Assembly (NCBI RefSeq): GCF_018350175.1
Contig: NC_058368.1
Location: 115,382,001-115,446,000, forward strand
DNA from: Felis catus
Taxonomy: Eukaryota
Length of the DNA: 64,000 nt
Reading direction: 5' to 3'
Part shown: positions 13,551-17,188 of the stretch, piece after piece
Layout: each line of letters begins with the position of its first letter
Position numbering within the stretch: position 1 is the stretch's first letter
The notes under the pieces: generated by a model
The model's database searches: none
Seen by the model: the letters and a program-made list of their open reading frames with translations, nothing else
What the model was told of the DNA's origin: nothing
Program-made: the position numbers and the translations under genes

Positions 13551-16211
13551 AATCATAAATTTTATGGTATTTGAACTATATACCCAATTTTTTAAAAAAT
13601 ATTTATTTTTGAGAGAAAGAGAGAGCATGAGCAGGGGAGGGCCAGAGAGAGAGAGGGAGACACAGAATCAGAAGTAGACTCCAGGCTCTGAGCTGTCAGC
13701 ACAGAGCCCAATGCAGAGCTTGAACTCACAATCTATGGATCATGACCTGAGCCAAAGTCAGATGTATAACTGACTATGCCACCCAGGCGCCCCCCCCCCC
13801 CACCAATTTTTTTTAATAAGCTCTATACCTAGCATGGGGCTTGAACTCAGGACCCCAAGATTAAGAGTCACATGCTATATGAACTGAGCCAACTAGGTGA
13901 TCCTATACGCAGTTGTTGGTTTGGTTTTTTTTTAATGTTTACTTTTTGAGAGAGAGAGTGTGAGTTGGGGAGGGGCAGAGAGAGAGAGGGAGACACAGAA
14001 TCTGAAACAGACTCCAGGCTCCAAGTTGTAAGCACAGAGCCCAGCATGGGGCTCGAACCCACGAATCATGAGTTCATGACCTGAGCTGGAGTTGGACACT
14101 CAACCGACTCAGCCACCCAAGCACCCCATCCTATACCCAGTTTTTAAAAACAGCAGAACATGCAGAGGATCCAGTATAAAGAATGTGGTCCAAGAAGGGT
14201 CAAGAACAAGTCATAGAAAAAAATTTAAAATTTGATACATCACGTTATATTAGAATACCTTATGTTCAATAATTGTAAGTCGTCAACATTCTGAAAGAAA
14301 ATGATCCTTACCCCTCTGGCTTTCACCTGGCTGGCTGTAACCAGAAATTTGGTCAGCAGTTGTTCCTTCCCTCAGCTGTCTAAGATACAAGATTAGTGTT
14401 TGGGCTCCAGTTTGTTCTTTTTGGTTTCAGTTATGATTTGTTTCCCAAATATTGCTTAATAAAATAATTTTATTTAGTCCTTTATGGACTCTTTCTCTAG
14501 GATTTATGCCAAAGCCACAGCTTGTTTGATGAAGTGATAATGAGCAAAAAAGCTGACCTAGAGCCTTGTCAAATACAGAGATTGGTCCCTTTTTGCTAAG
14601 CACTGTTGATATTTTCTTTGTTTACTGGTAGGCATCAAAGAGAGAGGGGAGTCCTTTGGGATTCTCAGACTATAGAATTTCCTGAGGCACATTTTTCATG
14701 GTTTACAATAAGCTTGTGCTCATAAATTGAATGGACTTTAAAAAAAAAATAGATTGCCTTTACATGTAGATATAATTTGATTACAGAGGCATATTTATTT
14801 AAATTTTTTTAAAGAGACATTTTATTTTTTTAATGTTTATTTTTGAGAGAGAGAGAGAGAGCACAAGCAGGAGAGGGGCAGAAAGAGAGGAAGACCTAGA
14901 ATCAGAAGCAGGCTTGAGGCCCTGAGCTGTCAGCACAGAGCCCAGTGCGGGGCTTGAACTCACAAGATTGTGAGATCATGACCTGAGCCGAAGTTGGATG
15001 CTTAACTGACTGTGCCACCCAGGTGCCCCTGTTTTGCTATTTTTTTGAGAGCACATGCATGCAAGTCGGGGAGAGGTCAATAGAGGGGGTGACAGAGGAT
15101 CCAAAGCAGGCTCTGCGCTGACAACAGACAGCCCAGTGTGGGGCTCAAACTCACAACCCTGAGATCAAGAGTCACATGCTTTACTGACTAAACTAGCCAG
15201 GTGCCCCTTTCTTAGATTCCTTTTATGGACTTAACCTTAAGAGTACGTATGTATAATGAAAACTCATACTATTCATATAATGTGAATTTAGTCTCTTAAG
15301 CTGGGGCTGGGGTGTTTATATCCTGAAACACACAGGTATTTTCTGAAATACTGAATACTACTGACAGTAGCATCATGGTAGTGACATCTGTATTTGTTAA
15401 GAGGTCCTCAAATATAAGTTACTAAGAACTGCTGCCCTAGTTATTTATTATTGTATACATGTGAAAGAGAAGCAGAGACAGACTGAGATTTATGTGCTAA
15501 GGTGTGGGTAGAATGAAAATAATAGAAGGCACTATAAAAGCAGACAGGACAGAAAACAGAGAATGAATATCTTTGATAAAAAAGTTTAAAAATAATGAAT
15601 TAGGACTGGCAATACATACAGAGCAAGGAAAAAACTATTTGTGGTAGGATGTTTTAGTTTTTAGTGTTTTTCTTGATTATAACTGGAGTAAGAACACCTG
15701 AAGTTTTTTAAACTCTATTCTCATATTAGGTATGCTGATTTCTTCCTTTGGCACAGGTCACGCTGCTGTTTGAATTTATGTACAAGTGACTCATGTAAAC
15801 TCATTTTTAGCAATTTCATACTTAATGAATTGGTAGAATATTGTAGAATCTGACCCTTAAGTTTCACACTTTTAGCCAGCAGTGTATCAACTGGTTTAGA
15901 TCATGTTATCATTTAATGAATAGTATATAAGAAACCCAGTCTACTGTATTAGATATTGTTGTGTTTTTACTCACATAGAAAGAGATTAGATGCTTGAACT
16001 AGTTGGAGTCTGGTAGTCCTTTGTGGCTGTGCACCTGCTTGCTGTTGCTTTGAAGGTGGGTGAGTCTATAGCCCCGGGAAGGAAGAAGTCATAAAAGCTG
16101 ACTTATCCATAACAGGTCTTTAGGTCCATTGGTGCAGCAAATTTCAAGGCTAAGAGAGGAAGACTGCTTCTGATCCCTGTAGGAAGAGGAAGCAGGAAAA
16201 GAAATCTCAAC

Positions 16212-16553
16212 ATGGAAAAGGTCTCCCAGGAAAGCATAGGAGAAAAGCAGGCTGCAGTGCAGAATGCAGAAGAAGCCCATCCTTTGGGAGGTGGTGAAGG
16301 CCAGGAGCCTGGAGGAAATATTAGAACAGGTTGGGCCTCACCTGCCCATGATGTTAGACAGGATATGCCCAATAGGCTTGTTAGTAACCTTGATATGATA
16401 GATGGAGTTGCTGATGATATGGAACGGTTCATGGAGGAGATGAGAGAGATAAGGAGGAAAATTAGGGAGCTTCATTTGAGGTGCAGTTTGCACATTCTTA
16501 TAGGACATCCCCCTCATGCTGACCATCGTGATGAGTTTTATCTTATGCCTTGA
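16212..16553 (+). CDS. BEX5: BEX5-like (NGFRAP1L1-like) intronless gene copy with an intact 113-aa ORF, nested in PAIP2 intron 1; expression unknown (retrogene or young pseudogene)
   Basis: The protein carries BEX hallmarks ([13 protein letters not shown]; [25 protein letters not shown]; SLHILIG.PPH.DH.DEF.LMP*) and is closest to BEX5. The start context is aatctcaacATGG. BEX5-like 3'UTR follows at 16554-16640 and resumes at about 17021-17152 after SINE insertions. Confidence 0.85.
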
Positions 16554-16644
16554 ATGCTGAGGTTAATATTAATAATAAAACCTCCTGCTTCCCAAAGTAA
16601 CGTTTTCTTGATGTACCCTTTGCTGTGAATCTGGTGTTCTGTCA

Positions 16645-17020
16645 TACTTCTTTCTTTCTTTCTTCTTTTTTTTTTTTTTTAATTTTTTTTTAATTTTTTT
16701 TTTTTTTTTTTTTTTTTTTACGTTTATTTATTTTTGAGACAGAGAGAGACAGGGCATGAACGGAGGAGGGTCAGAGAGAGAGAGGGAGACACAGAATCTG
16801 AAGCAGGCTCCAGGCTCTGAGCTGTGAGCACAGAGCCCGACGCGGGGCTTGAACTCACGAACTGCAAGATCATGACCTGAGCTGAAGTCGGACGCTTAAC
16901 CGACTGAGCCACCCAGGCGCCCCTCTTTTTTTTTTAATAAAGTTGTTTGTTTTTGTTTTGTTTTGGAAAGAGAAAACGGGAGGGGCAGGGAGAGGGGGAA
17001 CAGAGGATCCGAAGCGGGCT
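16645..17020 (-). mobile_element. Young SINEC_Fc (about 16645-16923) plus a SINE fragment, inserted into the BEX5-like 3'UTR
   Basis: Long poly-T and a near-consensus SINE body; BEX5-like UTR resumes at about 17021. Confidence 0.88.
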
Positions 17021-17188
17021 GTCGTTTTTCTTTTTGGATATTTCATTTTGAGTTAGTCTGGAAGTTTTTCTGTCAACAGGGGAGTTTCAGAAACTTGCAT
17101 GGAAAAGTTTATTACATACTGTGAAGGTAGTAAAGCAGTTTAAAAAGCAGTCTGTAGATAAACTCTCTCATTTAAAAGCATGCATATT

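Follow-up and report, generated by a model that had tools for sequence, protein, structure and literature searches.

BEX genes are built of three exons, with the whole coding sequence (CDS) in exon 3, and their proteins all carry a CaaX motif and, in every member but Bex4, a stretch of histidines (PMC4303428). One member of the family, Bex6, is found only in mouse (PMC4303428). The present analysis concerns a BEX5-like open reading frame (ORF) of 113 codons and a stop codon on domestic-cat chromosome A1, which runs from 16212 to 16553 on the + strand of the window, that is, of the whole stretch of 64 000 nucleotides that was analysed (G000:C1:115382001-115446000). The ORF is part of a retrocopy of X-linked BEX5, at 15999-17188, which lies in sense within the gene PAIP2, and this copy is probably an ordinary old processed pseudogene whose frame has stayed open by chance. 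A sequence-only reading had previously placed the copy at 16021-17152, limits within which it is indeed present and which a DNA comparison with the X locus now widens a little, and had suggested that it is a lineage-specific out-of-X retrogene. The description as a lineage-restricted, processed BEX5 retrocopy with an open frame holds; the suggestion of a functional retrogene does not agree with a ratio of nonsynonymous to synonymous substitution rates (ω) of 1.04, a rate of change equal to that of the intron, loss of the CaaX motif, and frameshifts.

Several described systems resemble the copy in part. Like its parent, it encodes 113 amino acids with a full-length match to the Pfam BEX family, and its untranslated regions (UTRs) are homologous to the three exons of that gene; unlike X-linked BEX5, it is autosomal, intronless, without the parental promoter and without the Cys of the CaaX motif, and its ω compares with a value of 0.29 for the parent. 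The exact loss of both introns, the copying of both UTRs, the location on another chromosome, the neutral rate and the later insertion of short interspersed nuclear elements (SINEs) are shared with the processed pseudogenes made by LINE-1 (long interspersed nuclear element 1). It differs from typical processed pseudogenes in that several species retain an open frame, and in that the poly(A) tail and the target-site duplication (TSD) are no longer clear. Functional out-of-X retrogenes, of the kind represented by PGK2-type testis retrogenes, are under purifying selection and have their own, often testis-specific, expression. The copy shares with them its origin from an X-linked gene and its autosomal, intronless state with an open frame, but its ω is about 1 and it carries frameshifts in several lineages. 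Mouse Bex6, which is located on an autosome, sets a precedent for a BEX member that is restricted to one lineage and stands beyond the ancestral set of five; it is treated as functional and is related to Bex4, whereas the cat copy is derived from BEX5 and shows no constraint.

The identity of the ORF is clear. There is no frameshift and no interruption at 16212-16553, and the encoded protein scores 96.7 bits for Pfam BEX (PF04538), where the cut-off is 26.1, with residues 1-109 aligning to positions 1-106 of the 106-position profile, which confirms the intact BEX-family frame of the sequence-only reading. The nearest paralogue in the cat is X-linked BEX5 (C47:81794613-81794951; L002), with 77% protein identity, and BEX5 proteins are the nearest relatives overall, seal BEX5 being 81% identical.

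Comparison of the window with the X locus gave four colinear matches (15999-16117, 16113-16189, 16165-16651, and 17019-17188), by which the copy, on the + strand throughout, can be divided according to the parental exons. The 5′ UTR derived from BEX5 exon 1 occupies 15999-16115 (80% identity to L011:8534-8414), the copy beginning where the X match begins, and is followed by the 5′ UTR derived from exon 2 at 16116-16182 (87% identity to L011:7326-7250). The first part of the region derived from exon 3 lies at 16183-16651 (85.5% identity to L011:6998-6515), and the end of the BEX5-derived 3′ UTR at 17019-17188 (87.8% identity to L011:6527-6357). A parental intron of 1.09 kb is precisely missing at the GT/AG junction between 16115 and 16116, and another of 0.25 kb, equally precisely, at the GT/AG junction between 16182 and 16183. 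Because X-locus segments that are split by two introns are here joined exactly at the splice borders, and because the CDS of BEX genes is in exon 3, the retrocopy is full-length and processed. No similarity to the X gene was found in the window upstream of 15999, so the copying did not include the parental promoter.

The copy is old. A Logan contig, L017, is colinear with the cat over 835 bp of upstream intron and the retrocopy, and its intron differs from that of the cat by 8.5%, the corresponding figure for a Panthera-like contig being 1.7%. Since L017 shares both the copy and its flank at this level of mismatch, the insertion is older than a split whose depth is several times that of crown Felidae. 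Judging by carnivore divergences, we take the species of L017 most likely to be a non-felid feliform. The autosomal copies lack every substitution that is specific to felid X-linked BEX5, and CDS topologies with insertion before and after the caniform/feliform split are equal in likelihood. Five felid genera (Felis, Prionailurus, Puma, Acinonyx, and Herpailurus) and L017 have an open frame.

Selection was assessed with a branch codon model, in our own GY94-type implementation with F3x4 frequencies, on seven autosomal and five X-linked sequences with frameshifted tails masked. The autosomal branches have an ω of 1.04 (95% profile interval approximately 0.56-2.1) and the X-linked branches one of 0.29, and a single ω for both is rejected (twice the log-likelihood difference, 2ΔlnL, 8.3; p 0.004). 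For the autosomal branches an ω of 1 stands (2ΔlnL 0.013), and values of 0.55 or below are rejected at p < 0.05. By class of autosomal branch, ω is 0.98 on the stem, 0.70 on the deep branches (p 0.34 against 1), 0.40 in L017 (p 0.15), and 4.6 in the felid crown (p 0.06); no class is significantly different from 1 under this model. Over its 342 sites the ORF has 11 steps (0.032) between cat, Prionailurus, puma, and cheetah; the corresponding value for 14.5 kb of aligned intron is 0.028 per site (P 0.36), and 31% of intronic windows of 342 sites are at least as variable as the ORF. The rate pattern of the ORF is neutral, with no constraint and no acceleration. Positive selection in felids was considered and is not supported, based on the non-significance of the crown ω and a total ORF rate equal to that of the intron.

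The protein has also changed where the family is conserved. The C-terminal third, which is invariant in X-linked BEX5 of rhino, seal, badger, and felids, has eight replacements in the cat autosomal copy. X-linked BEX5 ends in CLMP, and in all autosomal copies the CaaX Cys has become Tyr (YLMP or YLLP). The C-terminal His stretch, invariantly HHDHHD in X-linked BEX5 of the same species, has become HADHRD in the cat copy, HPDYRD in that of puma, and HRDHHD in that of L017. Among the traits of the BEX family, the copy lacks the CaaX motif and the conserved His stretch, which is a putative metal-binding region, as well as a location in the X-linked BEX/TCEAL cluster and the three-exon structure; the chromosome A1 location and the loss of introns are to be expected, because it is a retrocopy.

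Several lineages have damaged frames. In the Panthera-like copies a 4-bp deletion replaces the final 11 residues, with loss of the CaaX tail, and in L021, from another felid, a 1-bp deletion near codon 92 leads to a product of 96 amino acids. The copy in a further species, P0052, shares derived residues of the autosomal copies, L017 included, and is scrambled by several shifts. L017 itself has two in-frame deletions of 3 bp, one of them within a GAA repeat. Among the outcomes that, according to the sequence-only reading, would speak against a retrogene are a dN/dS of about 1 and disruption of the ORF in most sister species. The first is what the branch model returned; the second is found in part, with frameshifts in the Panthera-like copies, L021, and P0052 and an open ORF in the five felid genera and L017. 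Neutral calibration on intron outside low-complexity DNA gave 0.107 indels per substitution, 77% of them frameshifting, with 4.2% of substitutions destroying the frame; a raw indel to substitution ratio of 0.26 was set aside, as it is inflated by low-complexity DNA. On the autosomal branches other than that of the cat, about 3.7 disruptions are expected under neutrality and two were seen (P 0.29).

The setting in PAIP2 is supported by gene order. Three other felids, puma, Prionailurus, and cheetah, have a same-strand gene for a 124-amino-acid product with a PAM2 motif, and the ORF is located 1.4-1.8 kb upstream of its called CDS range; in cheetah an SLC23A1-like permease follows on the opposite strand. 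The neighbourhood is PAIP2-SLC23A1-PROB1, and the orientation of the copy is sense within PAIP2, as had been read from the cat sequence. Its assignment to intron 1, also made in that reading, is suggested by the layout: a CpG-rich, promoter-like patch (approximately 3300-4250) is upstream of the copy, and masked runs of N stand where exons are expected, three within the projected PAIP2 coding range (18410-18557, 20026-20173, and 22446-22762) and one just past it (23313-23492). A fifth masked run (3513-3684) sits in the CpG-rich patch. Further along the window, at 42717-45782 on the - strand, an intact single-exon ORF of 1021 amino acids is PROB1 (Pfam DUF4585), which backs a 5q31-like synteny of the window.

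In the explanation favoured here, spliced mRNA from X-linked BEX5 would have been reverse-transcribed, presumably by the LINE-1 machinery, and a full-length copy inserted in sense between the promoter and exon-1 region of PAIP2 and its first coding exon. The insertion took place before the Felidae separated from the feliform-like species that is now approximately 8.5% diverged. Having arrived without a promoter of its own, the copy would then have drifted as neutral intronic DNA, its 113-codon frame being spared by chance in Felis, Prionailurus, Puma, Acinonyx, and Herpailurus and suffering shifts or truncation in Panthera-like lineages and others. It is therefore likely that the copy has no function as a protein.

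A number of observations weigh against this explanation. The neutral chance that the frame would be open on the path to the cat is 0.027, and at least five felid genera have kept it open, as has L017, for whose branch the neutral chance is 0.19. The figure for the cat is acceptable only since the copy was chosen for being open; there are thousands of retrocopies in a mammalian genome. The ω values of the deep branches (0.70) and of L017 (0.40) are below 1, although not significantly. Between cat and L017, the ORF has diverged less than the UTRs of the retrocopy (7.1% against 13.9%; p 0.006). This difference is accompanied by UTR parts that are faster than the intron, and the 7.1% of the ORF is not below the 8.5% of the intron (p 0.55); CpG decay was tested between cat and L017 and does not explain the fast UTRs. 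In addition, NCBI pipelines annotate the locus as protein-coding. Finally, all sampled words of 15999-16651 are contained in 18 public sequencing runs of 63-509 million letters, from five studies; runs so small would fit RNA or capture libraries and are hard to get from shallow whole-genome DNA. None of the 18 is recorded as RNA, and their library type is a guess ('RNA?').

These points bear on three other explanations. In one, the copy is a living, feliform-specific retrogene that uses the PAIP2 promoter, for instance through splicing of exon 1 into a cryptic acceptor where a former junction lies shortly upstream of the ATG, and that encodes a divergent and fast-evolving protein without the CaaX Cys. 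The former exon 2/3 junction does offer a pyrimidine tract and AG, 30 nucleotides ahead of the ATG, and the containment of the whole stretch in small runs, the persistence of the frame across felid genera and L017, and the low probability of its neutral survival in the cat would all be accounted for, as would a felid crown with approximately 17 nonsynonymous changes to one synonymous. However, the crown ω is not significantly above 1, and a total ORF rate equal to the intronic rate is unlike strong positive selection. The frameshifts of the Panthera-like copies, L021, and P0052 also argue against a living gene, as do the loss of the CaaX Cys, the erosion of the His stretch, the failure to copy the parental promoter, and the lack of any run recorded as RNA that contains the stretch. 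A living retrogene is therefore unlikely, and it is similarly doubtful that there is a putative, fast-evolving BEX5-derived gene, expressed through a chimeric PAIP2 transcript, with adaptive amino-acid change in felids.

The copy could instead have been functional once, constrained early on the stem and in the lineage of L017, and later released to decay in the felids. This would fit the lower ω of the deep branches and L017 compared with the felid crown, and also the fact that both L017 indels are in frame and that the ORF is less diverged than the retrocopy UTRs between cat and L017. Yet the departures of ω in these two classes are not significant, divergence of the ORF equals that of the intron, and one of the two in-frame deletions of L017 falls in a trinucleotide repeat, where the unit is GAA. 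P0052, moreover, has derived residues in common with L017 yet is scrambled, and the change of the CaaX Cys to Tyr arose on the stem, because it is common to L017 and the felids, which counts against a period of early function. Such a history is improbable. It is very improbable that the copy has a non-coding role only, with the ORF irrelevant, in which it would modulate PAIP2 output as an occasional alternative exon, as a polyadenylation site, or through intronic transcripts. Its sense orientation inside a highly expressed gene, its former splice junctions and AGTAAA signal, and the runs containing the stretch would be compatible with this, but in comparison with the intron no part of the copy is slower, and its UTRs are faster. 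Neutral decay of a processed pseudogene is thus the explanation retained here.

The 3′ part of the copy and its surroundings carry marks of later insertion. Identity to the X gene is 85-88% in the two pieces of 3′ UTR, 16554-16651 and 17019-17188, between which lies a block of 367 bp (16652-17018, - strand) that includes an antisense tRNA-derived carnivore SINE (approximately 16703-16925), its tail appearing as poly-T, and an older SINE-like fragment (16950-17018). A BEX5-like 3′ UTR that has taken SINE insertions had also been seen in the sequence-only reading, and is upheld. The block is missing from the X-linked parent and from a second cat retrocopy, on C13, and is an insertion later than the retrocopy. 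The young antisense SINE is present in cat and Prionailurus and missing in cheetah and L017; the older fragment is also in L017. In puma there is a different, larger block at the site of the young SINE, and the SINE states are presence/absence markers within Felidae.

Near the 3′ end, the parental AATAAA has become AGTAAA at 17129-17134, and the A1 copy extends 35 nucleotides past the endpoint of the C13 retrocopy, which stops approximately 20 nucleotides beyond the AATAAA. Reading on from the end of the copy, two SINEs in sense come first and an A-rich/(GAA)n/(CA)n/(TA)n tract after them (17189-17571, + strand), the first SINE abutting the copy. The head of this first SINE is already in L017. 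The A-rich/(GAA)n/(CA)n part is placed at 17493-17571, beyond both SINEs, and may be a decayed remnant of the poly(A) tail of the retrocopy. A candidate 5′ TSD of 17 nucleotides (15982-15998, + strand) stops exactly at the start of the retrocopy, and a weak candidate 3′ TSD of 18 nucleotides is found at 17573-17590 (+ strand). With one gap, 15 of 18 positions of the pair agree, and the match is kept in puma and cheetah; it does not stand out statistically, as 13% of control intronic 25-mers score equally well.

Other BEX5-related sequences are present in the cat. X-linked BEX5 itself has an intact ORF of 113 amino acids, and the proposal that the A1 copy replaces it is therefore not supported. 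The cat X-linked protein differs at four residues (7, 21, 28, and 29) from the sequence common to cheetah and Panthera, which is many for so short a branch. The second processed BEX5 retrocopy, at G000:C13:123829930-123830573 (L012:4930-5573), is 5′-truncated, beginning in exon 2, and has an A-rich/(GA)n tail; its frame has a 1-nucleotide deletion and a 3-nucleotide insertion, and the stop codon is lost. It carries one change specific to felid X-linked BEX5, the V48G codon, and because this is common to C13 and the felid X gene, the C13 retrocopy is probably younger than the A1 copy. A sequence from run SRR13177417 (P0053) may be its orthologue. Weak BEX-like matches with internal stops were also seen at G000:C1:157769754-157770014 (L006, six stops) and G000:C47:88280429-88280719 (L007, one stop), and these are probably older dead copies or remote members of the family.

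The locus is already known to databases. An identical cat protein is present in NCBI and UniRef, and the felid orthologues are labelled 'protein BEX5-like'. Members of the UniRef 90% cluster come from Prionailurus bengalensis, P. viverrinus, Puma concolor, Acinonyx jubatus, and Herpailurus yagouaroundi, and the same cluster has an entry of 114 amino acids from Panthera leo. A literature search, including full text, found no paper on 'BEX5-like' or an autosomal BEX5 copy, and the main paper on BEX/TCEAL evolution does not mention an autosomal copy of BEX5 (PMC7586669). The locus is thus absent from papers but already in annotation.

The finding is of little consequence for biology at large. If the copy were a living gene, it would join mouse Bex6 as a second case of a BEX gene that is lineage-specific and lies outside the ancestral X cluster, and would exemplify promoter hitch-hiking on PAIP2. 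As a probable pseudogene, it is an example of a short retrocopy frame surviving for tens of millions of years by chance. An open frame of this kind would be the reason that automated pipelines call the locus protein-coding, as 'protein BEX5-like', in several felids, and the label needs caution in these species. The insertion, together with the later SINEs inside it, provides clean presence/absence markers for feliform phylogeny.

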